From Pecten maximus (taxonomy: Eukaryota), in contig NC_047033.1 in the NCBI RefSeq assembly GCF_902652985.1, positions 13,578,001 to 13,642,000 on the forward strand: 64,000 nucleotides of DNA. Reading direction: 5' to 3'. The position numbers and the translations under genes were made by a program. Positions 3,198-60,700 of the stretch are shown piece after piece. The notes under the pieces are model-generated. The model was not told the origin of the DNA. It was given only the letters and a program-made list of their open reading frames with translations, and did not search any database. Numbering within the stretch: position 1 is the stretch's first letter; the number at the start of each line of letters is the position of its first letter.

Positions 3198-3629
3198 ATC
3201 AATAGCTTTAGATCTATGACATTAACTGATATCGGAGTAACGCATCATGAATCAATTAAAGGGTATGTGTATGTATTTTTTCAAGCAGTAGTAATACTTA
3301 CCATATGTAGTATATACCATCGTAAACAGTATAAGAAGTTCTGCTCTCATGGTTTCTGATTTGTTGTTGGAAGTTTAAATACAAGACCAAATATTGAGAA
3401 GCTCACACGATACACGATGAGTTTTCAAATATCTTTTCTTAAAACTAACACATTGCTGTTTTAACAAAACACGTCGCTTCGTTCCCCTTCGTTTATCTAA
3501 TTGGTTGTTGCCCGTTCCTTTTAGCTCTTTGTTCGTTCAGAAGGAAAGTGTTATAAATAAGTAATTGATGACGATAGGAAGTTTGGATGCACTTTTGATA
3601 TACCTGGAAACCCCAAAGGCCAATATTTA
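3198..3629 (+). repeat. Direct repeat copy 1 flanking the LINE (candidate extra-long target-site duplication)
   Basis: Near-identical to 7366-7725 (ATCAATAGCT...CCAATATTTA); copy 2 lacks about 72 bp. Confidence 0.9.
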
Positions 3630-18700: not shown

Positions 18701-21700
18701 GTCTCTGTATTAGGGGTCTCGGTAGTAGGCGGGTCTCGTTAGAACGCGGGTCTCGGTAGTGGTCTGGGTGTCAGTGGTATCGGTAGTAGGGGTCTCGGTA
18801 TTCGTGGTCTCAGTATTAGGGGTCTTGGTATTAGTGGTCTCGGTAGTAGTGGTTTCGGTATTAGGGGTCTCGGTAGTGGGGGTCTCGGTAGTAGGGGTCT
18901 CGGTATTACTGGTTTCGGTAGTAGTGGTCTCGGTAGTAGTGGTCTCGGTATTAGGCTCTCGGTATTAGTGGTCTCGGTAGTAGTGGTTTCGGTAGTAGTG
19001 GTCTCGGTAGTAGTGGTATCGGTAGTAGTGGTCTCGGTAGTAGTGGTCTCGGTATTAGGCTCTCGGTATTAGTGGTCTCGGTAGTAGTGGTTTCGGTAGT
19101 AGTGGTCTCGGTAGTAGTGGTATCGGTATAAGGGTCTCGGTAGTAGTGGTCTCGGTATTAGGGGTCTAGGAAGTAGTGTTCTCGGTATTAGGGGTCTCAG
19201 TATTAGTGGTCTGGGTGTTAGTGGTCTCGGTAGTAGGGATCTCGGTATTAGGGGTCTCGGTAGTAGGGTCTGGGTATTAAAGGTCTCGGTAGTAGTTGTC
19301 TCGGTAGTAGGCGGGTCTCGGTAGTAGGCGGGTCTCGGTAGTATGCGGGTCTCGGTAGAGGTCTGGGTGTTAGTGGTCTCGGTATTAGGGGTCTCGGTAT
19401 TAGGGGTCTCGGTATTAGTGGTCTCGGTACTAGGGGTCTCGGTAGTAGTGGTCTCGCTAGTAGGGGTTTCGGTAGTAGTGGTCTCGGTAGTAGGGGTCTC
19501 GGTATTAGGGGTATAGGAAGTAGTGGTCTCGGTAGTATGGGTCTCGGTATTAGTGATCTCGGTAGTAGTGGTCTCGGTAGCAGGGGTCTCAGTATTAGGG
19601 GTCTAGGAAGAAGTGTTCTCGGTATTAGTGGTCTCAGTATTAGTGGTCTGGGTGTTAGTGGTCTCGGTTTTAGGGTCTCCGTAGTAGGGGTATCGGTAGT
19701 AGGGGTATCGGTAGTAGGGTCTCTGTATTAGGGGTCTCGGTAGTAGGCGGGTCTCGTTAGTAGGCGGGTCTCGGTAGTGGTCTGGGTGTAAGTGGTATCA
19801 GTAGTAGGGGTCTCGGTATTCGTGGTCTCAGTATTAGGGGTCTTGGTATTAGTGGTCTCGGTAGTAGTGGTCTCGGTATTAGGGGTCTCGGCATTGGGGG
19901 TCTCGGTAGTAGGGGTCTCGGTATTAGTGGTTTCGGTAGTAGTGGTCTCGGTAGTAGTGGTCTCGGTATTAGGGTCTCGGTAGTAGTAGTCTCGGTATTA
20001 GGGGTCTCGGTATTAGTGGTCTCGGTAGTATGGGTCTCGGTAGTAGTGTTCTCGGTAGTAGTGGTCTCGGTAGTAGTGGTCTCGGTATTAGTGGTCTCGG
20101 TAGTAGTGGTCTCGGTAGTACAGACCCGTGTACGTTCGCAGTTCCGATTTAAGCGTAGCGTTTCCGTAGCACTTCCGTAGCATTACCGTATCACTTCCGT
20201 ACCATTTCCGTATCACTACCGTAGCATTTCCGTACCATTTCCGTAGCACTTCCGTAGCATTACCGTACCATTTCCGTAGCATTTCCGTAGCATTTGCGTT
20301 TACCTATTTTCACTCGCTGACCGTCTCATAACCGTTCGGTAGAAAATTTTGCGGAGTGTATTTTTTATCGAAACGAAATTTAGTTAAATATACTTACCGA
20401 ACGTCACTAAAGCATAGTAGTGACAGCAAATAATTTAATAAGGAGGTGAGAATTAAATATATATGGTTATACATCTTTCTGTATCTTTGTTTAGAAAAAA
20501 TAACACTCTCACAAAAAACAAGTCAAGTCACGTGGTCCATCGATCTTAGTGTGATAAAAAAATGGTATAGTATAGTAGTCGACGCATTACGATGGAAACG
20601 AAGATGAAGATCGTGTCAAATAAATAATATTTCCTTTACTGTGCTATAGTCAAACCTTTAAAACTGTTCCATGTAATATGCACTGGTCAGGCTACATGTA
20701 TAGGGTACAAATGGTCCAGACAGTATCACACAGGTAAACTAGGGTAGTTAGACTTAATTGTCAGCGATGATACAAACAACACAGCATGTTGTACACTAGT
20801 CAACTAAAGGTACGGTATTCTGTGGACCAAGTGATACTAGGTGTGAAAGGTAGAACAATAAGAGATAATTATGACCTACAGGTAAGGCTATAGACTGCTT
20901 CATAAAACTTGGCTTCCAACATTAATGAGAATGTCATCGTGATCTACGGAGTTATTCATTATTTATTTCAGTTTTAAAACCCAAAGGTCTAATCACAAAA
21001 TTGATAACACATGATAAAATCAGAGACCGTATAAACGTGATATATATTTCTCTCGGTAAAACTACGACAGGAAATTCAAATCTATATCTTCGGATCATAT
21101 GTGATATATATGTATGTATCTGATAAAGTATAACAAGAGTAAATTAATTACAAAGTAAGAGCAAATACGGTATATAAAGTGCATACACATGTGAAATATA
21201 ACTGATGTCCTAAATAGAAATCATCCAGATAATCAAGTTAGTCTTTTTATAAACAGTAAAAAAGAGACTTAATTCTGAAAACAAATCTTCGTCCGACATA
21301 AATCTCTCAAGTGAGACGTTAAAAAACTGTCAGGAATATGACAAACGTAGTTTTAATCAATTAGGACTCTTTTAAGAACATTACAATTTCTTACAATAAT
21401 CCAGAATTTACAGGGATAAAGCAGGGTTGAGCTACTCGACCTAGTCAAAAAAAGATGTGGAACTAAAAAGTTAAATTATCCTGTACAAGTTCGATCAAGC
21501 AGGCAATGTAAAGATTTGAATAAAAATATATGTATTAATGCCTACATACCAGACTAGGTAAGTTGAATTGTGTACAAAACATGTAATATAGACTATGATC
21601 GTTTAGTTTTGATTTAAAACACGTAAAAGATGTAAAAGAGAGGGTGAATCATTTGAATCGCGTAGTTTAAGGACTGATATTATACAGATATTTTTTGTAT

Positions 21701-24700
21701 CATCACACTAACATCATCGTCAAAGTTGGAATAGCAAAACTTTTCTTCGTGGCAACGTTGCTTTACTTCATTAAGAAACACATCCGCTGCTAGTTTGATA
21801 GAATTTTATAATTATTGGTATGCACAAAAAATATTTGCTTTGGTGTCTTTTCTAAAATTGTTATTTTGTAAAAAAAAAAAAAAATAAAAAAAAAAAAAAA
21901 AAAATAACACACACACCCTCACACATATACACAGATTTAAATAACAGTCATACAAGACACTTGTTAATACTTCTATTATAAAAAGCATACCTTTGTAATT
22001 TAAACTCTTGAGATGGTGATGGTTTCATGATATATGTAAACTTAATAAATTTCGATTTTTACTGTGAATATCTAAGATTTGTTATAAGTAGCCTCTATAA
22101 ATTCATTTGAATCATTATTGTATAAGTCATATTCAACTTGACATTTTCATATTTTCTTTCATGAAAGTAAGAACAGGCTACTGCTATAGTTTAAACTCAC
22201 TCAGGTGTAAAATTTGACATGTTGGCCAGGTAATACAGGTAAATTTCTGTATGTTGGCTAAGTGAGAATAAGCCATAACTGGACCCCGAGGGGTTAATTG
22301 GGGACAGGTCACCTGGCCAGGTATACCACGTGCCAGACATAAAAGAGCTAGACTGATCGGCATCTTACAGGTAAAGTGTGATAGGATGCATGTCCTCAAG
22401 GCTGTGGGGGTTGCATATTGCGCCCAGTTGGCCATTGGCAACAGGTCTTTCATAGATGTTTGGCTTCAATGTAATGTACATGTGGTCTGGACATGTACAT
22501 GTCTCAAGATCTGTCGACAGAACATACAATGTATAATATCATATAGATGACTTGTACTGTAAAAAGCCTTTCAAGTTGAGAATAACAATGTAAAAGAAAC
22601 TTTAGTAAATTAACATTCAATTAAAATATTAATTTGTCTGACAAAATATTTACATGAAGTATATGTACACCTGAGTCAGCCATTATTAGGCCTCTGACAC
22701 AAACTGATGTATTGTAATAGAAGCATGTAAATGATTAAAATGATCGCAAACAGCATCAAAATTAATTTCAAAAGTAGATTCTTCACTCTACACTGTTGAA
22801 GTCTTTATATATTGAATCAAAGTATTACCGGGTTATGTCCTTTGTGATAATAAGTTTAAAAAAAACCATTGTGCACTAATTATACGTTTACTTCAGTACC
22901 TTAAATCTCGTGCACTCCTCACTTCTCCTAGGGTGCAAAGGTTAACTGATTGTCACTCAACTGTAGTTGTAGTCCATTAATAAATATTTTCAGAGTGTTA
23001 TCCATTATCACGTAAACATACAGAGTCTGCTCCATTGCAGACGTGTGATATCAGAGACATATATATGTCTCTGGTGATATACACGTATCTGATTGCACAT
23101 GTACATTGTATAGTCTTAAGTATATAATTATTGATGTTTTGTTTTTAGTTTTTATCCCTCCCCATGCAGCCAGAATTTCCTCTGATCCGACATCAGACTT
23201 TTAAACAAATCGTCAATGCTTACACACCATTAACATTACCAGTGATTGTTATATATAGACTTGCCAGGCATGTACATGTACTTGACTTAATTGTCCCCCT
23301 TACTTGTTGCCATGGGTACTAATCCCCCCTCCCCACCACCATCAACTTCACCTGATGGCCATGGATATACACTTGATTAGGAGTCACCGGGCTCAGGTGT
23401 GTAAGTCATAACCACACCTGGTCAGTTTCTCCTTTTTACAATTAGCCCTAGGCGGGTCTATTCATAGCCTGGTCAATCTGTGTTCAGAATTCTTGATCTG
23501 TTTACCTGTACCTAAATTAACACTTTGATACAAGTTTTACAATTCAATTAGTCTATTACTTAAACCTTAGGGTTTATCAGTACAAATGCGGTGAATAAAT
23601 GCAGTGAAAATATAGATAAATACATAAAAACAAAACGATAAAGTTCGGACACACAGAGACAACACATACGCGACCGCAGCGCTAGTGTCGAGAGTGATTT
23701 TATTTTAAAATTAAATACTATCGTCTTTTGTTGCCGAGAATAATAAATTATGACCTTAATATTTCCGGTTTCTAAAAGTTGTACAAATTCTCGCAAACTG
23801 AGGTTTTCTATTGTAGTAAAGTTTGATACAAAACGTTCTTCCACTTCCCGATACAACATTCACTCCATCAGACACCTTTCACTGTCGTTTCTACGAGTTC
23901 GCTTCGTCTAGGTTCCGCTTTTTATCAGAACCAGATAATTTATTCAGAAACGGTCGATTATTTGTGAGCGTCAACCGTAGCATTTCCGTAGCATTACCGT
24001 AGCATTACCGTAGCACTTCCGTAGCATTACCGTACCATTTCCGTAGCATTACCGTACCATTTCCGTAGCACTTCCGTGGCATTAGCGTAGCATTTCCGTA
24101 GCGTTTGCGTTTAAGACGGAACAGCGAACGTACACGGGTCTGTAGTGGTCTCGGTATTAGTGGTCTCAGTAGTAGTGGTCTCGGTAGTAGTCGTCTCGGT
24201 AGTGGTGGTCTCGGTAGTAGTGGTATCGGTATTAGGGTCTCGATAGTAGTGTTCTCGGTAGTAGGCGGATATCGGTAATAGGGTCTGGGCATAGGGGTAT
24301 CGGTATTAGGGGTCTCGGTAAAAGGCGGGTCTCGGTAGTAGAGGTCTCGGTAGTAGGCGGGTCTCGGTAGTGGTCTGGGTGTTAGTGGTCTAGGTATTAG
24401 GGGTCTAGGAAGTAGTGTTCTCGGTATTAGGGGTCTCAGTATTAGTGGTCTGGGTGTTAGTGGTCTCGGTAGTAGGGATCTCGGTATTAGGGGTCTCGGT
24501 AGTAGAATCTGGGTATTAAAGGTCTCGGTAGTAGTTGTCTGGGTAGTAGGCGGGTCTCGGTAGTAGTGGTCTCGGTAGTAGTGGTCTCGGTATTAGGCTC
24601 TCGGTATTAGTGGTCTCGGTAGTAGTGGTTTCGGTAGTAGTGGTCTCGGTAGTAGTGGTATCGGTATTAGGGTCTCGGTAGTAGTGGTCTCGGTATTAGG

Positions 24701-42700: not shown

Positions 42701-45700
42701 AGAGAGCCTTCCTGATAAAATTAGGATACGTGTCGTGAGATAGTAATGCATGTCAAAAAGGTAACTCCGAATATGATAGTAATGCATGTCAAAAAGGTAA
42801 CTTCTGATAAGATAGTAATGAATGTCAAAAATGTAACTCCGGATAAGAAAGTAAAATGTCAAAAATGTAACTCCGGATAAGAAAGTAAAATGTCAAAAAT
42901 GTAACTCCGGATAAGAAAGTAAAATGTCAAAAATGTAACTCCGGATAAGAAAGTAAAATGTCAAAAATGTAACTCCGGATAAGAAAGTAAAATGTCAAAA
43001 AATGTAACTCCGGATAAGAAAGTAAAATGTCAAAAATGTAACTCCGGATAAGAAAGTAAAATGTCAAAAATGTAACTCCGGATAAGAAAGTAAAATGTCA
43101 AAAATGTAACTCCGGATAAGAAAGTAAAATGTCAAAAATGTAATTCCGGATAAGAAAGTAAAATGTCAAAAATGTAACTCCGGATAAGAAAGTAAAATGT
43201 CAAAAATGTAACTCCGGATAAGAAAGTAAAATGTCAAAAAGGTAACTCCGGATAAGAAAGTAAAATGTCAAAAAGGTAACTCCGGATAAGAAAGTAAAAT
43301 GTCAAAAATGTAACTCCGGATAAGAAGGAAATATCCAAACCTAGGTCTAGATGTGCCCAGAATTATGTCAACGTTTCATCATATGTATTTTTCATTTCAG
43401 ATAGTTTTCATTCATAAGCTCACCTGTAACACCTTCATCTTTACCTGTGGGCGAATAATGCACTACCCCATGACACGTAATATTAGAAGTACAGGTAAGT
43501 GCATGGTTCATCAAGTTGTCAATTAAAAGAAAAGATCTTGTTTGTTGGGTTCTGATTAAATAACTTATGAAAATGTTTGTATCACTGACTCATTACACTA
43601 ATTGGATACTTCGCAATCCTATATATATATATAGGGTCTAGTAAATAATAACGACGGTATAAACCAATATAGGTACTGGATCCTAACAAACAAATATTGG
43701 ATGCGTATTACTAGAAATAGATATATGTCAAGTAGCAATAGGAACAGTTACACAAATATAGTAGGCATTCTTACGGAAGCGTATAGGTACGGAAGCGTAT
43801 AGGGGACACGACATACTTATTTATAATACATTATGTATAGTTATCATATCCCGTTTTACACACATATTTACTGTTATCTTGAGATAGATATGTCGACATA
43901 ACATACTTTATCTTCACATTTTACAGTTAAATAATCCAACTTATACATATAAAAGCATCTATCTAGAGTAAACATACATCGATATACATAATGTCAGTAT
44001 AAGTCCTTATAACACTATCTCGACTTGTTGCATTATATCTAATATGTTAATTTTACCGAAATCGACCTGTATATATATTTACCCTGAAGTTGAATCTTTT
44101 TATCGAGTTTTCGTGACATATTTAGTTTTATCAAGATGTGTAATATCGAGAAATCGTTTTGCAATATGGCTATTCGAGTAACGTGGAATCGTTTTTACAA
44201 CAACTATATCAACAATTCGAGTTTGACATTTCGAGAAATTCTACAACATCATGACAAGTTGAGTTGACGTAAGTCAAATTCATTAAACAGACACAACAAT
44301 TTGACATAAAAAAATGCGGGAATAATATATGTACGGTAATGTATGTCGAGAAGATTACCTGGCGTTCTTTATATACATTTGTAGCTAGGTTTAGACGGCG
44401 ATTTGGAAAATTTCTGGTATATTAGCCAATCGGAGCCAAGTATTGGTCCAAACATAATCTTATAGAAAGTGATCTTCATGACGAAGATTAGTCTTAACCA
44501 TGAGGAAACTTCTTCATACAAAGGTGCCGTTCTCGATTGTGATTGGCTGATGTAAAAGCCCAATCACAGTCGAGTAGACGCTCAGATTTCTTCCACGGGG
44601 ACATAATTTCCCAGCTTACGATCCATACATGCGTGTTAAAACAATATTGTAGGCTAAGAAATCGCGCCAAGTCCCTGGGATTTCTTTCGTATGAAAAGGG
44701 TTTCCACATTTAAAACAAATCTTAATCATGACGATAAAAATACACAAAAACTTTTTTTCACACAGGTCAACTTTATTTTACAAATACATACACTTAAATT
44801 TCAATCTTAACCTTTTTGCCGTTATTTACGACGATGACCATACCGACACTGTCCGGAACATGAATGGTTAAAGAGTCGTTCGAGTTCACTAGCACTGCAT
44901 TTTCAAACATATTTTCCTTAGATCCGTCGTCCGGGTTCTTTATCGCTGAGGAGTAACTAGGGGTAGCACCTGTACTTGAACTTGATTGTAAAGCAACAGA
45001 GTTTTCAATATTCTCGTTTTCTGTGTTTCTAACAGGGGGATTCAGAGAGTTACTGATATCCTTGAGCATATGCGTGAGTTCGCGCTTGTATAGATTTACA
45101 GCAGAGATGCGGTGCCAGGATCTTGAAGTTACAGCTTTATCATCAAACCCCTGGTTATAGAGTGTAGTACAACATGTGACACGTCCTCTATGATTGGAAA
45201 TATATCTACCACTTGTATCAATACCGGCCTCATTGTAGAATTTTTTCATCCTATTTCTCATGTCTTTCTCGGGAATATCTGCGGCACCAAATCGAGGATA
45301 TTTGTATTTGTCAGACAATGGTAATGGTTTCTTGTAAAAGTTTCCTTTTCCCAGGAATAAGGGACAGGTATAATGAGTACAATTTTATCAAACACCTAGG
45401 ATTTTCTGGACTAGCAAAATGTTTTACCTTTTTTGGTGCTACTTTTCGGTGGTTCAGTCCCCCTTGAGTATTTTTGGTTACTCTGGATTCGTAAAGAATG
45501 TATTCCTGTCCGTTTTCACGATCCGTTTCAATTTTGAACTGTTCCGCTTCCAAGTTTTTGTGCTCCTCCATGCCTCTAATTCCGAATGCCTTGCAGTTGT
45601 AAAAAAAAATACTGCATTTGATAAACCTTCCGCCGTATTGAAATTAAACACTCCTGATTCCCAGAATGTATTCTCCTCTCCAGGTAACACAGAATCCTTT

Positions 45701-48700
45701 GTTTTAACGTGTACACCAATTCCAAGAGAAGTAAGCTCTTTCATACGGGAATCCAGTGATTTTCTGAAGTTATCAAATGTAGCACTGTTACGCTGAAACA
45801 AACGTATTTCCTGACGATTCAATTCGTCGCGCAAATGTCTCTAAATTCCAGATCCAATCTGAGCTAGAGTGTTGGGAGGGTACGGCGTTCCGTCTTTCCT
45901 CATAATTTCGATAATAATCTGGACAGCCAGAAATCTAATGCTTTTGTATCGGTCATACTCAAATCCAAGGGAAGTGCGTACTGTTCATTATATGTTTCCG
46001 GCAACGTTTTCCGGTGAACCACCAAGTCGTTCCATATCGAAACACACCATTTAGTATTTGATCTTGTTTTCTTTCGAATCCTGTCAATGTGTTTTTTAGC
46101 CACATCCTCCGACGATAACGCGGGCCTAAAGCTTTCGGAATTCCTCGATACTTGAGCATCATCAGTTCTAAATGCCGATAAATTCAGTGTTGGAATAAAA
46201 GTTTCTAATTGTGTCAAACTGACAGACGCCCAGCTTCGCCCCTCTCAAAATCATGAAGATTTTTCTTAATATCATCTAACCTTTACTACCGTAGTAGTTT
46301 CCAAACCAGATAGTCGGAGGATAAGTCAGGGAATTTCTGATGCAAGAACGCTTTACAAAAGAGTATTGGAGGTGTATGATCCTGGCAGTGAGATGGCTAT
46401 AGTTTGGGCCGGTAAAATTGAAAGGCTAAAGCCAGTAAGAGGCTAAATGTCTGCATATTAGAATCCCGAGAAACGCCCAGTAATTTTATCTATTCGACGA
46501 GAACTTGAGTACAGATTGAATCGAAGTAATAACATTGCTTCCATAAAACCATCATGTGTGATACTTTCAACAAAACAATTACTGTACGGGGTATAGTATG
46601 GGCTACATTTTAAGCTGTACAGTGTACATTCTACAAACGGCAATTCAAAAACAAAAGGTTTTTTTTTAATTTTACTAGTAGACTACATATATCTTCAGCG
46701 CAGTGTTGCTAAACATGCTCAAATGGGGGAAATGTGCCAGGTATGGGGATGCATAAACAAGGGCAGATAACCATATAAATTCACTTATGAATCATATTGA
46801 AAGGTTCTACCGAGTTTACCGTCATATAAATCTTGTTCATGCCCAAGTTAATGTCCTAGACATGTATAAATCATGGGGATCTTATGAGCATACTTAAAAT
46901 CTTATCCCTTCAAATAACGAAATGGTATAGAAAATTTCCAAATAAGTCGAAGAGCCCAGCAATACAACATATCAATTTAATTACAGTGAAACATCGGTAT
47001 TCAAACCTCATTAGAGACTTGACAGAATTGGTAATAGTGAGTGTGACCATGCGGACAGGTCTTTCCAGTTGCTATTTTTCAGTATATTTTCATAAGTATT
47101 TAATTAGCAAGTGGGCTTCATTATATTAAACACTAGTTGCTTAAGCATTGAACTGCATTCAGTTGCCATTAATGGGTATATGAATGCCAACTAGACAAAG
47201 GCAAATCCAACGAATCAAGAACAATGCTTATATTTACAATTTTTGCAATATGTTCATCTCATAAAAAATCACTGCATCATTTGTGATTGTGCAGTTGGAA
47301 CAGCCATCGTCCATCAGGGTATGTGGTCCCCAACGTTACAATTATAACGTCGTTATAATGATGATGTCAACTATAGGTCCATGGTAGCTATTGAGTTTGG
47401 AAATGATATTTCAGTCTATGATGAGGTCAATATAGTGTTATACCGACCTAGTAGAGTGAAATATTAGCCGAGAGCGAAGCCCGAAGTCAATATTTTAGAT
47501 ATCAAAATATCGACATCTACATGACTAGGATTTAGCCAATGAGAATTGAGGAAAATCGGAGCATATCTATATTCTATGAATTTAGGTTTATGTTTTACAT
47601 CCGGCGGACCCGTATATTAGTGCAAAAGCCTTCCTGCGATAGTGTTTTAGTGAGGTATTCTATATCTTTAATGATATATTGAAAAAATATGTATGATCTA
47701 ATCATATCATTGTTTTTGAACATTAACCATCTTGAGCAGTTTATTACCCTGTGCATGGGCTCTGCTTCAAAAGCACATAAGCATATCGGCTATAAGATAT
47801 TGTCATGTATTTAGGGGTCATTTAACTGTGTATTCTGTATATAATTTGTTATGCATTTTATTAGCCTTTGCTCGTGGACAGAGTTAAAGAAGTATTTGGG
47901 CAGCTAAGTAGCCATAGATAATTGTTTTGGTTCGGAAGCTGTAGATTAGAGTGACCGTGTGAAATCTTGTGTGGAGAAGTCTAGTCTGTGACATCACTTG
48001 TTAGGGAGGCCGAATGAGCTGACCTGTAGGTCAATCTAAAGTTATCCTTATCAGCAGCCTCGATTTAGGTACCAGTATTCTGACAAAGGGGAGCACATTT
48101 AGAATAGGGATTTCGGAAAGAGCGGTCAGTTGTTAGTTAGTCGGTAGCCAGCGGTCAGTAGTGAGCAGTACGTAGGACTAGTGAGTTGGAGATCAGACAG
48201 TAAAGAGGTCTGGAGGTTAGGGTTTTATAGTAGAGAATAGAAGTGAGCAGATTCGAGGAGATCTGAGAGTTGAGAATATATTCCAGAGATCGGATAGTTA
48301 TAGTAGTCTTAAGAGTAGTTTGTGGTAGATAGTGTGAATAATAGTGTGTAGTTTTAGTAGTTGGAGTTAACAACTGAGTAGATGTACAGGTAGTAATAGA
48401 GAACGATTGGAGACTAGTGTGGAGTGCCTTGATATTGACTGATGAATTTATTATATGATTTATGATGTAAATAAAGTGTAAATATAATCTTAGATAACTT
48501 TTGTTCAATTAATTTTGAACTGGTGGCAGCGGTAAAGACAAACGGCGAGATACAGAAACGTAATACTGGTACCAGTGGACGAATTGTTAGAGTTTACAAA
48601 ACTTGCAACACTGGTGGTCGCGGTGGAATTTAGAGTTGACAAAACATGTAACAATATGTACAATGCAACAATGATGAATTTTTAGAAAATGTAATGATTT

Positions 48701-51700
48701 CATCAGTGTGATTTTTGGACAAAGTGTGTGTGTTTTATTGTCGTTATAATATGATAATTATGATAAAGTGTCCGGTTTTCTTAAAATTCATTTTTCTCAG
48801 TGATTATTTAAAGGATAATTTAGGTCGATAAGCCAAATATCTTGCTCACATGCGATGTCAGATCAGTTAATAGCGGCGACGAACATTGATGTACAATGTT
48901 ATTGAAATGTTCATTTCTATATTATTAACCAAAGGTGAAATTAGGCAGTACATTTGTACCTACTGTTAAGATTTTTTAAATTAGGCGTTAACAAAGATAT
49001 TTTCAGCAGAATGGTCAAAGCACAATGTTAAAAACAACACCGCATTTGAAATAGAGTTTATTTTGTTTCATTTTAATGCAATACACACAATGTATACAAG
49101 TAATCACTTTGTAGTACTAAATAGTATCGCGACATTGTATTTATTCATGTACTAGTATGTATAAATAGGCACTCGTTACCACAGTTTCATTATTCTGGAC
49201 TTTGGGAGACAACATTACTTCAAAACGTCTAGTTAAGCTGTAAACATTCTTATTGCTTCATTGGCCGTCCTTGGTTGCACAAGCTCGTCGCGATTTGTAT
49301 CTGAAAGTAATTCCACAATTTGCAGAAAATTGTCATTGCAGTCAAACTTTGGAAATGGGACGGTATAGATATCAGCAACACGTTCCACGTCTTGTTGTTC
49401 AAAGGGAACAGGGAGAGAATAGTAAATTGTACCAAATAATTCTGGTTGGAAATAGGGTACATTTGGTATTCCACAGTAACAGTCACTTAAATGCTGTTGT
49501 CGTATGCGGTGCCTGTTCCACATGTATCTAAACTCATCAAGCTGTCTCTGTATCGCGCCAATAAAACAGAATATTACGCACTCAATATGAATAGGATATG
49601 TATCTTGCAGTATCCCAGAATCACCCAGGCCTTTGAAAAGTGACTTCCAAAACTGTATTACATGTCTGTTAAGGAAACCCCAAAACATTTCGATCCTTTG
49701 ATTGGCTGTGGAACGTCCTTTCAGAAATACGGGCTGGCCTGCTACTGCATCCGGATGACGTGATCGCAGAGTTTTATGCAAGTCTTCGATTATTACATTT
49801 TCTGTACCGTTATCAGAACGAATACATCTAGGAACAGTCATGGTTCGTAAAACCTCATCTATATAAAACCGTGCAACATATCGTGGGTTGTTGTTGGTGA
49901 ATCAAGCTTTCAACCAAACAATTCGTCGCGAAAATCCGTCGATTGAACCATGTATCGCAATACCGTAAGGTTTAAGCATATCGAATCCATCCATGTGCAT
50001 CAGGAAATTCGATCCCTTATTGTAGTATAACCGTCTCCGTAGTCTGTGACTTCTGCGATTATTTACGCCTTCATTGTCAATTAGTCGTAGTGCTGTCGAG
50101 TCATTAACTGTGTAACACGCAATCCACACCTAGTATTCAGCAGTTTCCATACCGTTCTGTACCCGACGTCAATTAGACCTGCATCCCGGAGTCTTCGGAT
50201 TCCCCGTTTGACATCTCGAGCCGGAGCTCCTGCGTTAGAACGACGCAGTCGTTGTCTACGAAGTATTCTTTTCAGCTGCCGTAAATTCAAAACAACATCA
50301 TGATGGATCAAAAGAAATCCAAGGATTTCATAATACGTATAACCATCATTGAAGTAAAACGTGACCATTTCGTCCAGATTTGAATCATCATTTATGAATA
50401 TGTCAGGGTCATCTGCGCCGTCTACTGCCACCACAAGGAAGATTGACAACACCAGTACAATCTGTAAAATACAAAATGACCACAATACTATCTCAAATAA
50501 CAATTGGTGTAAACATGTTTCGCAATGGATCTTCTTGAAAACTTCAACATCTCGGTAAAAGACACTTATTGTTCTTATTATTTATAATAACATTCCAGTA
50601 AGTTTTCTTTATTTAGAATAATTAAAATTGATACCAATGTCTATGCATTGGATATGCATTACGGAAAATAATTCATTAGCAGTTCTCGATTATACAAATA
50701 AATTTAATGCAATTGAAGGAAATTTCGCCCCCTGTTATTTTCGCTCTCGGCCATTAAAATCCTTTTTAACTGAGAGGCCAAACCGGTATAAAGTACTGAT
50801 TCAGCAACTCTATTGTTTAGTCTCAATTTGGTCCTCTAACTTCCAAGATTTTTCAGAGGTTATCCAAGGCAGAATCATGTGCCGTGATAATTTAAAAAAT
50901 ATAATAATTATTGCTTATTATATTTACCTGCTTCAGTGGCAGCATATTCCAAAATTATTGTTGTACGTCCACACTCAATAGTAGCAGCTCTCCCTTCTTC
51001 AAACGCTATGCAAATGCCCTTGTATCTTATTAATTTTATTGTTCTTTTGTAGAGGAAAACATCAACAGTACTAAATCGAAATACATCAGTATGAGCTATT
51101 GTATAACCAGACAAATCGTTTTACTACAATTAAGCAATTAAGATTTAACTTGCCAAGTCGAGAAGTTTACCTAAATGTAGCCGAGTATAAGTTAATATCT
51201 CAACAACACCTACGTCGAACATGAACTTTCAAACTTAAAATTCGAGATAATATAAATCGTGTTCAAATGTTATACCTTATTCTTACCGGTTTTTTTCTTG
51301 GGATGGCAAGATATATTTCGTAAACACGAGTTATAGTATTTTGAGATATGAAAAAAAAAATATAAAAACCACAAACATTAAGTTAAAATGTGAAAGTACA
51401 AGGCTCTAAAGACAACAAATTAGATATTGAAATAACTAAGTATATGGATAATTCAAGATAGTGTTATAAGGACTTATAATGACATTATGTATATCGACAT
51501 ATGTTTACTCTAGATAGATGATTTTATATGTATAAGTTGGATTATTTAACTGTAAAATGTGAAGATAAAGTCTGTTATGTCGACATATCTATCTCAAGAT
51601 AACAGTAAATATGTGTGTAAAACGGGATATGATAACTATACATAATGTATTATAAATAAGTATGTCGTGTCCCCTATACGCTTCCGTATATAGGGGACAC

Positions 51701-54700
51701 GGCATACTTATTTATAATACATTATGTATAGTTATCTACGGAAGCGTATAGGGGACACGACATACTTATTTATAATATATTATGTATAGTTATCATATCC
51801 CGTTTTACACACATATTTACTGTTATCTTGAGATAGATATGTCGACATAACATACTTTATCTTCACATTTTACAGTTAAATAATCTAACTTATACATATA
51901 AAATCATCTATCTAGAGTAAACATATGTCGATATACATAATGTCATTATAAGTCCTTATAACACTATCTTGAATTATCCATATACTTAGTTATTTCAATA
52001 TCTAATTTGTTGTATTAGAGCCTTGTACTTTCACATTTTAACTTAATGTTTGTGTTTTTTTACAGTTTTTTTCATATCTCAAAATACTATAACTCGTGTT
52101 TGCGAAATATATCTTTCCATCCCAAGAAAATAAACAGGTAAGAATAAGTTATAACATTTGAACACGATTTATATTATCTCGAATTCTAAGTTTGAAAGTT
52201 CATGTTCGACGTAGGTGTTGTTGAGATATTAACTTATACCGGGCTACATTTAGGTAAACTTCTCGACTTGGCAAGTTAAATCTTAATTGCTTAATTGTCG
52301 TAAAACGATTTGTCTGGTTATTACAATATCTCATAATGATGTATTTCGATTTAGTACTGTTGAAGTTTTCCTCTACAAAAGCACAATAATATTAATAATA
52401 TACAAGGGCATTTGCATTGCGTTTGAAGAAGGGAGAGTTGCTACTATTGAGTGTGGACGTACAACAATAATTTTGGAATATGCTGCCACTGAAGCAGGTA
52501 AATATAATAAGCAATAATTATTATATTTTTAAAATTATCACGGCACATGATTCTGCCTTGGATAACCTCTGAAAAATCTTAGAAGTTAGAGGACCAAATT
52601 GAGACTAAACAACAGAGTTGCTGAATCATATACCGGTTTGGCCTCTCAGTTAATGGGTGAAAATGAAAAGTCGGCTAAAATAGATGGTATCATACAAAAG
52701 ACCGGCTGACTCAAGGGCAAATCTAAGACTGAGGAAAAAAGGATTTTAATGGCCGAGGGCGAAAATAACACTGGGCGAAATTTCCTTCAATTGCATTAAA
52801 TTTATTTGTATAATCGAGAACTGCTAATGAATTATTTTCCGTAATGCATATCCAATGCATAGACATTGGTATCGATTTTAATTATTCTAAATAAAGAAAA
52901 CTTACTGGAATGTTATTATAAATAATAAGAACAATAAGTGTCTTTTACCGAGATTTTGAAGTTTTCAAGAAGATCCATTGCGAAACATGTTTACACCAAT
53001 TGTTATTTGAGATAGTATTGTGGTCATTTTGTATTTTACAGATTGTACTGGTGTTGTCAATCTTCCTTGTGGTGGCAGTAAACGGCGCAGATGACCCTGA
53101 CATATTCATAAATGATGATTCAACTCTGGACGAAATGGTCACGTTTTACTTCAATGATGGTTATACGTATAATGAATCATTGGATTTCTTTTGATCCATC
53201 ATGATGTTGTTTTGAGTTGACGGCAGCTGAAAAGAATACTTCGTAGACAACGACTGCGTCGTTATAACGCAGGAGCCCCGGCTCGAGATGTCATACGGGG
53301 AATCCGAAGACTCCGGGATGCAGGTCTAATTGACGTCGGGTACAGAACGGTATGGAAACTGCTGAATACTAGGTGTGGATTGCGTTGCACAGTTAATGAC
53401 TCGACATGCACTACGACTAATTGACAATGAAGGCGTAAATAATCGCAGAAGTCACAGACTACGGAGACGGTTATACTACAATAAGGGACCGAATTTCCTG
53501 ATGCACATCGATGGATTCGATAAGCTTAAACCTTACGGTATTGCGATACATGGTTCAATCGACGGATTTTCGCGAGGAATTGTTTGGTTGAAAGCTGGTT
53601 TCACCAACAACAACCCACGATATAATGCACGATTTTATATAGATGAGGTTTTACGAACCATGACTGTTCCTAGATGTATTCGTTCTGATAACGGTACAGA
53701 AAATGTAACAATCGAAGACTTGCATAAAACTCTGCGATCACGTCATCCGGATGCAGTAGCAGGCCAGCCCGTATTTCTGAAAGGACGTTCCACAGCCATT
53801 CAAAGGATCGAAATGTTTTGGGGTTTGCTTAACAGACATGTAATACAGTTTTAGAAGTCACTTTTCAAAGACCTGAGGGATTCTGGGATACTGCAAGATA
53901 CAGACCCTATTCATATTGAGTGCGTAAGATTCTGCTTTATTGACGCAATACAGAGACAGCTAGATGTGTTTAGATACATGTGGAACAGGTACCGCATACG
54001 ACAACAGCATTTAAGTGACTGTTACTGTGGAATACCAAATGTACTGTATTTCCAACCAGAATTATGTGGTACAATTAATTATTCTCTCCCTGTTCCCTTT
54101 GAACAACAAGACGTGGAACGTGTTGCTGATATTTATACCGTCCCATTTCCAAAGTTTGACTGCAATGACGATTTTCTGCAAATTGTGGAATTACTTTCAG
54201 ATACAAATCGCGACGAGCTTGTGCAACCAAGGACGGCCAATGAAGCAATAAGAATGTTTACAGCTTCACTAGACGTTTTGAAGTAATATTGTCTCCCAAA
54301 GTCTAGACTAATGAAACTGTGGTAACGAGTGACTATTTATACATACTAGTACATGAATAAGTACAATGTCGCGATACTATTTAGTACTACAAAGTGATTA
54401 CTTGTATACATTGTGTATATTGCATTAAAATGAAACAAAATAAAGTCTGTTTCAAATGCGGTGTTGTTTTTAACATTGTGCTTTGACCATTCTGCTGAAA
54501 ATATCTTTGTTAACGCCTAATTTGAACATCTTAACAGTAGGTATAAATGTACTGCCTAATTTCACCTTTGGTTAATAATATAGAAATGAATATTTCAATA
54601 ACATTGTACATCAATGTTCGTCGCCGCTATTGACTGATCTGACGCCGATCTGACTGATCGACCTAAATTATCCTTTAAATAATCACTGAGAAAAATGAAT

Positions 54701-57700
54701 TTAAAGAAAACCGGAAATCTTTATTATACTTATCATATTATAACGACAATAAAACACACACACTTTGTCCAAAAATCACCCTGATGAAATCATTACGTTT
54801 TCTAAAAATGCATCATTGTTGCATTGTACATATCTTATAGCCGATATGCTGATGTGAATGGATACTTTTGAAGCAGAGCCCATGCACAGGGTAATAAACT
54901 GCTCAAGATGGTTAATGTTCAAAAACAATGATATGGTTAGATCATACATATTTTTTCAATATATCATTAAAGATAAAGAATACCACACTATAACACTATC
55001 GCAGGAAGGCTTTTGCACTGATATACGGGTCCGCCGGATATGTAAAACATAAACCTAAATTCATAGAATATTGATATGCTCCGATTTTCCTCAATTCTCA
55101 TTGGCTAAATCCTAGTCATGTAGATGTCGATATTTTGATATCTAAAATATTGACTTCGGGCTTCGCTCTCGGCTAATATTTTATTCTACTAGGTCGGTAT
55201 AACACCATATGGACCTCATCATAGACTTATATATCATTGCCAAACTCAATAGCTACCATGGACCTATAGTTGACATCATCATTATTACGACGTTATAATT
55301 GTAACGTTGGAGACCACATACCCTGATGGACGATGGCTGTTCCAACTGCACAATCAGAAATGATAAAAAAATAATAATGCAGTGATTTTTTATGTGATGA
55401 ACATATTGCAAAAATTGTAAATATTTGCCTTTGTTTAGTTGGCATTCATATACCCTTTAATTATAAAATATAATGAAGCCCACTTGCTAATTAAATAATA
55501 ATGAAAATATACTGAAAAATAGCAACTGGAAAGACCTGTCCGCATGGTCACACTCACTATTACCAATTCTGTCAAGTCTCTAATGAGGTTTGAATACCGA
55601 TGTTTCACTGTAATTAAATTGATATGTTGTATTGCTGGGCTCTTCATCTTATTTGGAAATTTTCTATACCATTTCGTTATTTGAAGGGATAAGATTTTGA
55701 GTATGCTCATTCCGGAAACTACAGACTTTACTCACAATTATGATCAACATGGACAGCTAACCACAAAGCTATACAATAGGTCCTAAACGTGACGATTTTG
55801 ACCTTCCGGTCGTAAATTTCCCTTTCTCGACAGCATCATTCCTGTTTCTCGATCCTAAGATATTTACATGTTGCAGTTGTTTCAGTTTTTTAAAGCTCAT
55901 TTCCTTGATATATTTCGGCTGCTGGCTAAAAATACTTGAGAGATTCTGGTTGATGAAAACTTTGGGCAAGTTTTACGGTCGCCACTTTCATCTCATCATG
56001 GAATATTCGGTCTCCTTGTTTGATTTGAAGGTGGACGTTTTATCGTTTGATTATTCATGCCCAGTGTTGTTATGTTGTTTATGCCTTGGTTCTGATTTGA
56101 AGGATGTGACCTTTACTTGAATGTGACCAAGATTTGCATGATGGATGTCGTCGACGAAGCAGTGTACGTTTTTGTTCGATTTTTGATGATGGTGGGCTAA
56201 AATGAAGGTGTTCAAATGAAGGTGTTCTATATTAACACAAAGGATGGCTATGTTTTAAGTTAGAGACTTATCTCCATAACATATACATATCAAATATCTC
56301 CGGTAAGCACATATATAGCGCATGTAACAGTTATAATACAAACTATTAAATACCCTCCCTTTGATATTTCTACTTATTAATTGTTCTAAAAATGTGTACG
56401 TTCAAGGAACACCCCAATCTCTAGTACGAATATGCATACGCTCCCTACACTATGCTCTAACGACGACCATCTGTCAGCAATCGTCCGTCCGTCGTTAGAG
56501 CAACGATATCGCAGCGACCCAATCTCACAAGGAACACAACCTTGGTTCATAACTGTATTCCATGTACATTTTGTATCTTGCATTATATTATATTTAGTTT
56601 TTTGTATACATTGTACTCAGTTACTGTATACTTCAACAGGTATAAATCGTCACCATATTAGATACAGATTAATATCAATGTATGTAATGTAAGGATAGGA
56701 TGCATGAGTTTCTCGATGTAACTGCTGAAAACTGGATATGAAAACATAACATAAGAGAATATATATCAACAAATATTCTATTTGAAAAAAAACATTAGCA
56801 TGCTTCTCAATCACAATAAGACAAGAACACCTCAAAACAATTGGAATCATACTGACCCTCGTACCCTTTAACTAAGAATAAGAGTAAAAGAAGCAATTGA
56901 GACCTGTGTCACACCTAGTGAATGTTCTAAATCAGCAGCAATAACGTTCAGCATATGTGACAACATATCAACAAGTCAAACGACATGGTTAAATGAAGCA
57001 TAAAAAGTAGGTCAAGAATATGCCTGTAACACACATTTAGACACCAAGCAAACATACCAACCAAACTGTGTACCTTAGGACGGATGGACGAGCACAAATC
57101 TACATTCCCTCAACCTTGTTGCAAGGGAAACAATATTTGGTATACAATATGAAAGAACTTACAAGGCATAATAGACCCTTCATATTACCGGGTATACACA
57201 AAACAATCAGAAAAAAAATATGCATAAATATACTCAGTAGGCTTTTTTTTTATAAACAAGCATCTGGCAGTGTAATATCACAAAACGTTTGTCATAAAAT
57301 ATCACATATTGCTTTGAGTAACCACTTGTCAATGTGCAGATATAATGACTGCAAAATATCAAAATATATTGGCTGCAAACTATGTGCAGTTTTACAGAAG
57401 GATACTTCCCACCAAACATTATTGAATTTGGCTAATCGGTTCTTTAATGTGATATAGAAAACCATTTGACCATTTACCCCTATTTAGCCCCCATGTTACG
57501 CAAATGTGAGCACAACTACCTTTTATAATACATAAATGTAATATTTTCACATGGGGATGTTTCCTCCCACATTTTGCACTATTTCAATACCCCTAGGTTT
57601 TCCCCCGTTTTGTTTACAAACTTTGAAGCCTTGTTCCTTTGGACTCTAGATGTCAATAATGAAGTCAATTGGACTGTTGGTTCATGAAAAGATTTCTCCA

Positions 57701-60700
57701 ATTTTACCCCTTTTCTCGAAGGGTCCACATCATTTTCCTTCAAATGTATCTATAGAACGCCAGGTAATCTTTTCGACATACATTACAGTACATATATTAT
57801 TCTCGCATTATTTTATGTCAAATTTTTGTGTTTGTTTAATGAATTTGACTTACGTCAACTCAACTTGTCATGATGTTGTAGAATTTCTCGAAATGTCAAA
57901 CTCGAATTGTTGATATAGTTGTTGTAAAAACGATTCCACGTTACTCGAATAGCCATATTACAAGACGATTTCTCGACATTACACATCTTGATAAAACTAA
58001 ATATGTCACGAAAACTCGATAAAAAGATTCAACTTCAGGGAAAATATATATACAAGTCGATTTCGGTAAAATTAACATAATAGATATAATGCAACAAGTC
58101 AAGATAGTGTTATAAGGACTTATAATGACATTATGTATATCGACATATGTTTACTCTAGATAGATGATTTTATATGTATAAGTTAGATTATTTAACTGTA
58201 AAATGTGAAGATAAAGTATGTTATGTCGACATATCTATCTCAAGATAACAGTAAATATGTGTGTAAAACGGGATATGATAACTATACATAATGTATCATA
58301 AATAAGTATGTCGTGTCCCCTATACGCTTCCGTACATTCTTGCAACAATACGATATTTTTTGTTGTTTATACCTGCTATATTTGTGTAACTGTTCCATGT
58401 TCTATGTCTATATGTGATCGTATGTAATTTACCTGTGTCTTGATAAAGGGGCAGATTGCCTCGAAAATTCGACAATTTACTTGTCTGTACTGTCGTTATT
58501 ACTACTTGACATATATATATATATATATATATATGCAATATGTGCGGCTGCGTCTTGCTTGTTTGATGTTATACCTAATTTGTAGATTGTACGTTGGTTT
58601 TATTTGATCTATAGTTGTTGATTTTCATATGGGGTAATAGCTGGCGATTTGTGTGGGAGATGTTTGAGGGAGTGTGTGAGTGTGGGAGTGTGTGTGAGGG
58701 TGTGTGTGTGTGGGAGATGTGTGAGGGAGTGTGTGTGAGGGAGTGTGTGAGGGAGTGTGTGTGAGGGAGTGTGTGTGTGGGATTGTGTGTGAGGGAATGT
58801 GTGTGTGGGAGATGTGTGAGGAAGTGTGTGTGGGTATAGAAATATCTGATGAGCATTTATTTACGCGCTATACACCTATATAGTATTGCATCATAGGATA
58901 ATGATGATCGGTGTTTTAAGAAGCATTGCTGTTTGGCTTTTAGGAACAAAAGTTGTTGTTGTTTTTTATAGTTGTACTATTTTGGTATGTAATGTTTCAT
59001 GTGTTGTCTGTCATTTCATATCGAAAGTTGATTAGATTTCAGCTGTTGTTTGTTCGACTCGCCAATTCGCAAAAACAAAATCGCTTTTTAAAAAATCTCC
59101 ACTAGTCAATACTAATCTTAACGCATATTTTACAGGTGTTAGGCATGACTGCTTCCCTACAACTACAACTACCTCTACCACCACCTCCACTACCACCACC
59201 ACTACCACCACCACCACCACCACCACTTCCACTCCTAGTACAACTGATTTCACTACTACTGACACCACTAGTACAAATGCTTTCACTACTTCTGACAATC
59301 CTGGTACAAATGCTTTCACTACTTCTGACACCCCAAGTACAAATGCTTTCACTACTTCTGACACCCCTGGTACAACTGCTTTCACTACTTCTGACACCCC
59401 TGGTACAAATGCTTTCACTACTTCTGACACCCCTAGTACAAATGCTTTCACTACTTCTGACACCCCTAGTACAAATGCTTTCACTACTTCTGACACCCCT
59501 GGTACAAATGCTTTCACTACTTCTGACACCACTAGTACAAATGCTTTCACTACTTCTGACACCCCTAGTACAAATGCTTTCACTACTTCTGACACCCCTA
59601 GTACAAATGCTTTCACTACTTCTGACACCCCTGGTACAAATGCTTTCACTACTTCTGACACCACTAGTACAACCGCTACCACCACAACTGACATTCCTAA
59701 AACTACCACTACCATTCCTACAACCTCAACCTCCTCCACTCTCACTGAATATCTATCAACAAGCGAGTCACCGACCACTAGTACCGCCATCGCCACCACT
59801 TCTACTGTCACTACAACTGAATCTCCACAAACAACCGTAACAGAGTCAGCAACGACAATGGAGGCAAATGAAACAACTACTACCAATGCATCGACAAACG
59901 CAACCGGTAAATAAGGTCGAAACGGGAATACAATGTCTTCTGAATCCCAGTGTCTGTCACGATTTTTAACATGCTAAGTAGTAAGCGTTTTGATCAGAAC
60001 ATCATAACTTTTAAGTGTTTGGGTTTTGAATTCACCAGCCGTTGATATTTTGTTACAAATATCCTAAAGTGTTTATCATCAGTTGGAGATTAGTATTATG
60101 CCTTGTACAATGTGGTTATCTATGGTAGGTTTTATACCTCCTAATTTCGTGGATGTTATATTTAATATATCCTTATTTGTTTTAAGATATGATTTTAGAG
60201 ATATTACTTTTCATGTTTGATTTCAGACATCGTAAGTCGGTGGTGTTAGGCTTCAAACATACTAATTTGTCGAAATTCCTTAACATCCTCCAATATATCA
60301 AATTGTTCCTCTCTTGACGTACCTTCTCTGAACTGTTAGTTATTTAACAAACTTCATACGGACGAATAGGAAAAGCCATTTTCTTAGGTCAGACTTAAGA
60401 TTTGACCATTCTGTCTGGGTTGCTATCTTTTTAACAGATAACGTGATTTCTTTAAATTTAACACTCGAAACCATGGTTACGCAACCAACTTTTAATATAT
60501 CTTATTATGCACAAAGCAAGGAGTAAAGAGTGCTCAATTTCGTTAGGAAATTTCCCAATGATGAACATTTGCAAGTACATTTTATATGCTAAACGTCCTT
60601 ACAGTATTTCGATATGTAAAATAACATTGGCTGCTCATTGGAAAATATATCCCAGCAAACAAATTTATCTTAGATTGATGCAAGATGCAAGATGCAAGAA

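Follow-up and report, generated by a model that had tools for sequence, protein, structure and literature searches.

Does a eukaryotic DNA transposon ever take the terminal inverted repeat (TIR) of a resident transposon as the place at which to insert? The question is raised by a block of nested elements in the window, i.e., the whole 64-kb stretch of DNA analysed here, where one TIR is interrupted after its position 16 and breaks off again after its position 58.

Two breaks in one terminus

The order can be read directly as CATTCT, a 16-bp piece of terminus, a first copy (E1), TATAGG with terminus positions 17-58, a second copy (E2), and CATTCT once more. In window positions the features are:

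43766-43771: left copy of CATTCT, the 6-bp target site duplication (TSD) for the whole complex, assigned on the basis of the identical hexamer at 58335-58340
43772-43787, + strand: recipient terminus positions 1-16, TACGGAAGCGTATAGG, matching the family tip; the TATAGG at its 3′ edge is the left copy of the E1 duplication
43788-51688: E1, 7901 bp, subfamily A1, transposase on the - strand
44797-46217, - strand: degenerate Crypton-like tyrosine-recombinase region (DUF3504 and Phage_integrase), common to subfamily A1 and absent in E2
47801-48653: 853-bp solo LTR nested in E1; the sister copy on C8 has a full LTR retrotransposon at the same point
49242-50461, - strand: E1 transposase remnant, HTH and rve/rva_4 core, with a 1-bp deletion near 50094 and stops
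51689-51736, + strand: recipient terminus positions 11-58; the leading TATAGG is the right copy of the E1 duplication, the last bases are GTTATC, and it has a private G
51737-58334, + strand: E2, 6598 bp, subfamily A2, transposase on the + strand, right end adjoining the outer CATTCT
53042-54259, + strand: E2 transposase remnant, with frameshifts and stops
58335-58340: right copy of the TSD CATTCT

A complete terminus opens at 43788, straight after TACGGAAGCGTATAGG, the right edge of E1 (...CCGTA) is at 51688, and the TACGG terminus of E2 begins at 51737. When 43772-43787 is joined to 51695-51736, positions 1-58 of the family TIR are rebuilt with a single private change, a G at TIR position 24 that was seen in none of the 31 other ends compared, and this private base shows that the recipient fragment does not derive from a copy elsewhere. 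E1 truly is inserted by both its ends, 16 bp into a TIR, and has duplicated the 6 bp TATAGG. What stands in front of E2 is an in-phase 58-bp duplication of the terminus with a single junction, and from it we infer the second insertion, at position 58. A collapsed nested insertion fits this duplication, and one-ended or sister-chromatid joining fits it too; a collapse within the 235-bp TIRs would need no same-orientation recipient. With 58 bp of a symmetric TIR, the recipient may have had either orientation.

The layout drawn in the original prediction was correct to the base (CATTCT, TATAGG, the cut after 16 bp and the TACGG end at 51737), and its first copy is a genuine insertion into a TIR. 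It had claimed two separate insertions into that one TIR; this holds for E1, but the second has one junction only and is explained equally well by a tip-bounded duplication without a second element, as with the C17 copy described below.

The 23-nt tip occurs four times in the window against an expectation of zero, and no further copy of the element is present in the 64 kb besides those in the block. A search for an empty site or intermediate allele found the left flank once in the assembly, with no haplotig. The block sits in a TE-rich intron.

The element and its two copies

To what class does the element belong? Judged by its sequence it fits IS3EU/GingerRoot, as the original prediction had it (IS3EU-like), with TA..TA ends, 6-bp duplications and an IS3-like integrase core. 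Every end reads TACGG...CCGTA, and TA..TA termini are a criterion for IS3EU/GingerRoot (PMC10045372). In addition to CATTCT and TATAGG in the window, 6-bp duplications accompany eight other copies, seven of them perfect (ATTTGA, TTAGGG, CAAACT, AATATC, CTTGCC, TGATTA and CTTAGC) and one matching at 5/6; the C8 copy, examined for the same, has none. The single transposase, of ~410 aa, has an rve-type DDE core. The window ORF matches Pfam rva_4 at E = 2e-20, the conserved D, D and E columns are retained in copy L054, and full-length homologues carry HTH_21 and rva_4/rve without a zinc-domain match, HHCC being absent as the class requires. The best bacterial models for these homologues are IS3 and IS481, both far under their cut-offs, and a PDB sequence search with a full-length homologue yielded nothing useful.

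E1 and E2 are of different subfamilies, A1 and A2, with ~95.5% identity and a segment of 2-2.5 kb that differs, and their interiors are inverted relative to each other. The TIRs are 233-236 bp long, 233 bp in E1 (43788-44020 and 51456-51688) and 236 bp in E2. The nearest relatives of E1 are the C8 copy, on another chromosome (99.3% identity), and the C17 copy (98.9%). On sequence comparison E1 is young, and younger than E2, which fits the sequence of events proposed below. The transposase genes of both are broken. In a related family, at least 12 identical frames of 452 aa are intact, a possible source of transposase. Might any of the stops be programmed, with recoding allowing synthesis of a longer transposase? 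This was considered and rejected: the in-frame TGA of copies L052 and L054 is CGA or CGG in other copies, and so the stops are copy-specific decay.

Ends inside ends across the genome

Is the window alone in having ends within ends? In the 918-Mb genome the 23-nt tip occurs 47 times, and its reversed control not at all. A generic search (tip 8-mer, 0-30 nt, tip 8-mer) gave 653 matches against 194 for its control and was swamped by satellites and a Gly/Tyr repeat; family-specific patterns were used instead. With these, a tip followed within 0-30 nt by another tip was matched 14 times genome-wide, compared to zero for the reversed control; five of the matches belong to a coding repeat of Gly/Tyr, a sixth is a tandem duplication of the ordinary kind, and the eight junctions that remain are in phase with tip nucleotide 1 (k = 10, 14, 14, 15, 15, 16, 18 and 18).

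Only two cases in the 918 Mb have both junctions intact, E1 in the window and one on C9, where an A-type copy has split a D-type MITE's TIR 18 bp from its tip, with TTAGGG duplicated, the TIR resuming on the far side, and the same relative orientation as E1. The C9 recipient comes from a separate MITE family whose tip is likewise TACGGAAG; with 194 ends, this D-type TIR marks a real family, and the junction is visible as a loose end in run X3, from another study. The right end of the C8 copy, a candidate third TIR hit, was rejected, as what lies there is a TA-flanked Tc1/mariner-like MITE, unrelated to IS3EU targeting. Five loci also have, between them, another six tip duplications that are in phase, their junctions lying 10-18 bp away from the tip; the window junction at position 58 falls outside this zone. 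Seven of the eight tip-containing duplications begin exactly at tip nucleotide 1, while that on C3962 extends into the flank by 7 bp and is plainly of the ordinary tandem kind. These other loci suggest a tendency of the family to place its ends within those of resident transposons, 10-18 bp from the tip.

How much of this would chance supply? By rough arithmetic, the ~407 counted ends, at 9 bp each, make up ~4e-6 of the genome, and for the ~18 other A-type insertions ~7e-5 tip-zone hits are expected where one is observed. The chance that random tandem duplications would all be in phase is ~1/8100, again roughly and for the informative cases only. The totals, two intact cases and seven in-phase tip duplications (six short ones and the 58-bp one of the window), are significant on the same rough footing, the events being few. 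Such a count had been proposed as a check on the original prediction, and by this arithmetic ends inside TIR tips exceed chance.

The tip duplications are without an inner duplication, and the MITEs seen whole (L045, L048 and L038) are without a matching outer duplication either, so that for the tip duplications an insertion origin is not proven. A tip duplication is present in none of the 194 D-type ends, and in a control with a neighbouring 10-mer, tandem arrays derived from TIRs turned up at 1-4 loci, which means that these TIRs are prone to tandem duplication anyway. A genome-wide search for abutted ends of the IS3/IS30 kind, circle junctions and tandem dimers found no tail-to-head ends within 30 bp. 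A different geometry is seen at C17, where the copy's right tip has been linked to DNA 168 bp upstream of its own insertion, giving (flank+element)(flank+element), with 168 bp of flank and 559 bp of element repeated at 99.45% and the right tip as the junction. This is a tip-bounded duplication, a tip being joined to nearby DNA with the flank duplicated, and it shows that in this lineage the transfer of tips to DNA very close by does take place.

A probable target choice, its alternatives and its precedents

That insertion by this family is directed to TIRs we judge to be likely, if only just, from few events. The sequence itself shows the older A2 copy, E2, with its outer duplication CATTCT and an extra in-phase TIR 1-58 before its left end, and the younger, non-autonomous A1 copy, E1, which went into this extra terminus at 16 bp in a normal reaction of both ends, with duplication of TATAGG. 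Under the proposal, both events would be instances of a transposon tip integrating into a resident TIR and would reflect how the transposase works in this group of families: it may recognise, or be bound to, a resident TACGGAAG terminus and capture it as target, strand transfer then landing in a hot zone ~10-18 bp inside the tip, much as bacterial IS3 and IS30 elements are directed to IRs. In-phase tip duplications could follow by either of two routes, one being that a nested pair collapses by recombination because long direct repeats are present, and the other that a single tip is transferred into the sister chromatid, as may be so for the 58-bp one. It is possible, though we are doubtful, that IS3EU transposases have kept or re-evolved the inverted repeat (IR) targeting of their bacterial IS3/IS30-like relatives, with the TACGGAAG terminus preferred and strand transfer fixed ~16-18 bp inside; families sharing the tip would then attack each other, and collapse would seed tip duplications and perhaps TIR-derived satellites.

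But what if E1 is the sole true TIR hit, and the 58-bp and short tip duplications arose as side products where the transposase had cleaved a tip, in repair or alternative transposition, through run-off synthesis with end joining or through transfer of one end to the sister chromatid, with no preference for TIRs as such? Such an origin would suit duplications that have one junction and no inner 6-bp duplication, and also the tandem duplication at C17, which ordinary insertion could not produce; alternative transposition of Ac/Ds gives tandem direct duplications and composite insertions (PMC3744419, PMC4270019). It is nevertheless unlikely, as it leaves unexplained both the clustering of k at 10-18 bp and C9, where the TIR of another family was entered at nearly E1's distance from the tip, and one-ended transfer into a sister's TIR is itself TIR targeting. 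It is quite improbable that a chance nested insertion in a TE-rich intron merely lies beside an unrelated small tandem duplication, and that the other loci are unrelated small duplications. The events are indeed few, tandem arrays from TIR sub-tip sequence occur, and the C3962 duplication with its 7 bp of flank is clearly of the ordinary tandem type, but one further tip-zone hit was found where ~7e-5 were expected, seven of eight tip-containing duplications start at tip nucleotide 1, and the reversed pattern had zero matches.

Local reinsertion is common among cut-and-paste elements. Very local hopping, which the original prediction had entertained, would have copies reinsert beside their donor, the TIR hits reflecting proximity and not recognition; in its favour are the recorded self-insertions of P-element constructs (PMC4744444) and the transfer at C17 to a site 168 bp away. 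However, E1 (A1) does not derive from E2 (A2), to which it is 95.5% identical with a 2-2.5 kb segment apart, and its nearest relatives are those on C8 and C17; the 64-kb window has no other copies, though a since-excised donor is possible, and at C9 the recipient was a MITE from a different family. With relatives of E1 on other chromosomes, the idea found no support and is very improbable. That the junctions are mis-joined reads from near-identical copies is hardly credible, for although two inverted repeats of 6-8 kb and ~96% identity make up the region and the read evidence is of short Logan contigs, none of those listed bridging 51688/51689, the 48-bp fragment has a base found in no other copy compared and shares with the 16-bp fragment exactly the 6 bp of the duplication, the outer hexamers match, the third junction is crossed, over bins 51705-51798, by a run X1 contig at about single-copy depth (5, the repeat having 134-500), and another study's run has a loose end at the C9 junction.

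IS3EU is among the least studied of eukaryotic DNA transposon superfamilies, and we know of no IS3EU transposase that has been characterised biochemically. Structure and function of the superfamily are largely unexplored (PMC11934779), and in the literature on it no description of target choice or TIR-directed insertion was found. If insertion is directed to TIRs, IS3EU would have its first rule of target choice, in the form of a reproducible hot zone within resident termini, and a link in behaviour to bacterial IS3/IS30 elements. This would also be a simple means of self-limitation, since every such hit puts a terminus out of use, and it would account for odd duplications at termini by which TE annotation is confused. 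For directed integration, a short DNA motif drawing insertions to a fixed distance would have practical value. Should the pattern amount to no more than a few coincidences, what the locus holds is two dead transposons, nested in the ordinary way within an intron.

How does this compare with systems already known? Nested MITEs were reportedly described by Jiang and Wessler in 2001, and they resemble the present case in that a copy lands inside a copy of its own family. The same is so for the self-insertion of P-element constructs (PMC4744444); these reports are not known to describe a fixed hot zone of the kind proposed here, a few bp inside the tip and common to families with the same tip. With IS3EU/GingerRoot the element shares TA..TA termini, 6-bp duplications and an rve-type DDE core, its homologues adding the IS3-type HTH_21, and beside that class it has long TIRs of ~235 bp and, in A1, the degenerate Crypton-like region. 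Maize Ac/Ds alternative transposition gives tip-bounded duplications, a geometry shared by C17 and the short in-phase tip duplications and perhaps by the 58-bp one of the window (PMC3744419, PMC4270019), but Ac/Ds are of the hAT superfamily, and two nearby elements and large segments are involved, whereas here the first 10-58 bp of the element's own TIR are duplicated.

Turning to bacteria, the junctions here, at 10-18 bp (and 58 bp) inside a TIR and with a normal 6-bp duplication, are unlike those of IS3/IS30, and the genome has zero abutted ends, neither adjacent ends nor tandem dimers being seen. In bacteria, IR-targeted insertion occurs directly beside the tip, the products being abutted ends or (IS)2 dimers. 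For IS911, of the IS3 family, and for the IS30 family, insertion is directed to a resident IR, even that of a merely similar element, with synapsis of donor end and target IR as the proposed basis (reviewed in PMC7986276, which cites Loot et al. 2002/2004 and Olasz et al. 1993 as the primary papers). What is alike is a transposase of the same broad lineage, and a resident inverted repeat as its target, here a putative one.

One copy within the terminus of another

Two dead IS3EU copies, E1 and E2 (subfamilies A1 and A2), make up the locus, and one copy certainly sits in the terminus of the other. Read at three places, the layout originally predicted was borne out to the base.

Layout of the locus (window positions, by direct reading)
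43766-43771: outer CATTCT, left copy
43772-43787: recipient terminus fragment, 16 bp, TACGGAAGCGTATAGG
43788-51688: E1, full element
51689-51736: TATAGG and onward recipient terminus, last bases GTTATC
51737-58334: E2, second full element
58335-58340: outer CATTCT, right copy

As predicted, E1 inserted in the ordinary two-ended manner, 16 bp within a terminal inverted repeat (TIR): both junctions are seen, the 6-bp duplication is perfect, the recipient TIR resumes on the far side and the overlap of its two pieces is exactly TATAGG. Joined, the pieces give family TIR positions 1-58 with a sole departure: position 24 is G, unlike in any of the 31 other ends compared. Four copies of the 23-nt tip are present in the window, with none expected, and 47 in the 918-Mb genome (reversed control, 0). 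Could the junctions be artefacts of assembly? The assembly holds no alternative haplotype of the site and the read evidence on the window junctions consists of short contigs, not long reads, but an artefact is unlikely given a base private to the recipient, an overlap of exactly 6 bp and identical hexamers at the outer ends.

Of the two insertions predicted for this one TIR, that of E1 stands; the second event shows one junction, with terminus positions 1-58 joined directly to nucleotide 1 of E2 and the right end of E2 adjoining the outer CATTCT, and is also obtainable without a second element. By route (a), a copy would insert after position 58, and direct-repeat recombination between copy and recipient would follow; the same orientation on which the predicted collapse relied is unnecessary here because the 235-bp TIRs are enough. 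By route (b), the sister chromatid's copy of the same element would receive a single tip, and the product would be flank, TIR positions 1-58 and whole element, with the outer duplication kept and no second element required. Across 58 positions the recipient fragment and the left TIR of E2 show two differences, one private to each, which agrees equally with both routes.

Relevant to route (b) is a tandem duplication on C17 (L044, C17:26558000-26567999, positions 1515-3992), in which a 168-bp flank with an internally deleted copy is followed by the 168-bp flank with a full copy. The 168 bp of flank and the first 559 bp of the element are repeated at 99.45% identity, and where the repeated flank begins it is joined straight to the right tip of the deleted copy. 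Ordinary insertion was rejected as the source since it cannot yield such a structure, and the arrangement suggests transposition that was one-ended or between sister chromatids: transfer of one tip to a sister-chromatid site 168 bp upstream would give the repeat. The C17 copy and E1 are of the same young clade. The case shows that tip-bounded local duplications occur in the IS3EU-type family of E1, and so keeps route (b) available for the 58-bp duplication.

Junctions within termini across the genome

Is the window a solitary case? The genome count of ends within TIRs that had been proposed as a check used a pattern of tip 8-mer, 0-30 nt and tip 10-mer, and gave 14 matches (control, 0). On inspection five are a Gly/Tyr-rich coding repeat and one, on C3962, is simply a tandem duplication of 28 bp taking in 7 bp of flank. 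The remaining eight junctions begin exactly at tip nucleotide 1.

In-phase junctions and their distance (k) from the tip
Window, E1: k = 16 bp, intact insertion
C9:7591312: k = 18 bp, intact insertion
C1:15667740: k = 10 bp, tip duplication in a MITE
C6:22598886: k = 14 bp, tip duplication in a MITE
C8:4058496: k = 14 and 15 bp, stacked, tip duplications in a MITE
C1:18473618: k = 15 bp, tip duplication in a MITE
C19:5586636: k = 18 bp, tip duplication in a MITE

Searches for right-hand junctions led with E- and D-type tips to C9 only and with A-type tips to the window only, so the intact nested cases are two. On C9 a 7.1-kb A1 copy, in the same relative orientation as E1, lies within a D-type MITE's TIR, which, counted at 194 ends, is a real family; TTAGGG is duplicated, the D-type TIR resumes past the nested copy, and the junction shows up as a loose end in one run from a different sequencing study.

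How much weight can so few events bear? On a rough estimate the tip zone, (213 ends of TACGGAAGCGTAT type + 194 D-type) x 9 bp, is ~4e-6 of the genome, and by rough arithmetic ~7e-5 hits would be expected for ~18 other A-type insertions, with one found. All k lie within 10-18 of a permitted 8-38, and the chance of all informative tip-containing random tandem duplications being in phase is, again roughly, ~1/8100. Position 58 of the window duplication is outside the 10-18 bp zone. No inner duplication accompanies the MITE tip duplications, tip duplication is absent from D-type ends, and the MITEs with TACGGAAGCG tips that were seen whole (B/E types; L037, L038, L039, L045, L048) are without a matching outer 6-bp duplication, unlike A-type copies, which have 6-bp target duplications. 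A neighbouring-10-mer control found TIR-derived tandem arrays, and these TIRs are therefore prone to tandem duplication anyway.

The largest array, C3:44682782-44683669, is a satellite with a 19-bp unit repeated ~47 times, and nt 1-14 of the unit are identical to positions 9-22 of a MITE TIR (L048 type); with smaller arrays at C12:7077151 and C13:5978750, it appears to be a TIR-derived satellite. In the window itself, 20168-20289 and 23990-24100 are arrays of an 11-bp repeat, TACGG(A/T)AA(T/G)G(C/G), of a family dispersed over many loci, the motif resembling the IS3EU tip TACGGAAG.

Identity, state and age of the copies

Self-comparison of the window reveals that the interiors of E1 and E2 are mutually inverted, which had been missed earlier; TIR length is 233 bp in E1 and 236 bp in E2.

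Coding features (window positions)
49242-50461, minus: transposase gene of E1, homologue-guided
53042-54259, plus: transposase gene of E2, homologue-guided
44797-46217, minus: Crypton-like tyrosine-recombinase region in E1 (DUF3504, E = 8e-13, and Phage_integrase)

In E1, minus-strand ORFs match the Pfam integrase core domain rva_4 (E = 2e-20), and guided by the best homologue the gene is one intronless frame of ~410 aa. Among 1.8 billion representative proteins searched there are ~2000 relatives; full-length ones are about 390-420 aa, with HTH_21 (IS3-type) preceding rva_4/rve, and among bacterial family models they score best against IS3 and IS481 transposases, in both cases far under cut-off. 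The best copy keeps the conserved D, D, E columns. Duplications of 6 bp flank eight other copies, seven perfect and one 5/6. Published IS3EU/GingerRoot elements have TA..TA termini and 6-bp duplications (PMC10045372), and in these features the element, which itself has TA..TA termini, fits that description; the IS3EU-like class originally assigned stands on termini, duplications and the rva_4 core of the transposase. The degenerate Crypton-like region is shared by subfamily A1 (also L054, 4807-6229) and may be either a Crypton nested there or a passenger gene; A2 has a different, unrelated 2-kb segment in its place.

None of ten copies examined has an intact transposase frame, and a shared recoding signal was rejected, the stops being copy-specific CpG-type changes. 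Because E1 shares 99.3% identity with a copy on C8 and 98.9% with one on C17, against 97.5% for E2 and its nearest relative and 95.5% between E1 and E2, E1 is the younger arrival, mobilised in trans, and no local offspring of E2, contrary to the very local hopping once proposed. E1 contains an 853-bp solo LTR (47801-48653, TG..CA, ATAT at both sides) where its C8 sister (L059+L060, C8:5571213-5585297) has a complete 6-kb LTR retrotransposon at the same point, so the retrotransposon was already in place when the composite moved or was copied. That C8 copy lacks a matching 6-bp duplication. Inside its A-type right TIR, at positions 31-32, is a ~960-bp MITE with CAGTCAAAC... inverted ends and TA at the flanks, Tc1/mariner-like.

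Elsewhere in the genome a related transposase gene has at least 12 copies with an identical uninterrupted 452-aa frame (e.g., C1:57160403-57161554, C4:3721952-3723103, C19:28444808-28445959). The frame shares 54% identity with its best outside homologue, and the family, IS3EU-like and probably active, may be a source of transposase. On C93, C381, C384 and C876 several A-type ends lie within a satellite of GTCGTAATAACGACTTAG-like unit, and their common flank, CTTAGC, suggests an element amplified along with the satellite, or haplotig copies.

A proposed capture of termini and its parallels

The locus and the rest of the genome point to TIR-directed insertion, from few events, and to that extent the original interpretation is supported in part. 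We incline somewhat to the view that the group's transposase captures a resident TACGGAAG terminus as target, that strand transfer would then fall 10-18 bp within it, and that later collapse or one-ended events would leave tip duplications. No description of target choice in IS3EU was found in the literature, and the superfamily's structure and function were in 2025 termed largely unexplored (PMC11934779). TIR-directed insertion has been described in bacterial relatives but apparently not in the IS3EU superfamily. Bacterial IR-targeted insertions abut the IR tip; the genome has no abutted ends and the junctions here lie inside the TIR, so that the likeness is one of outline. For the bacterial system the basis proposed is that a donor end and the target IR enter synapsis (PMC7986276). 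P constructs have been recorded inserting into themselves (PMC4744444), and for tip-bounded duplications the nearest eukaryotic parallel is Ac/Ds alternative transposition (PMC3744419, PMC4270019).
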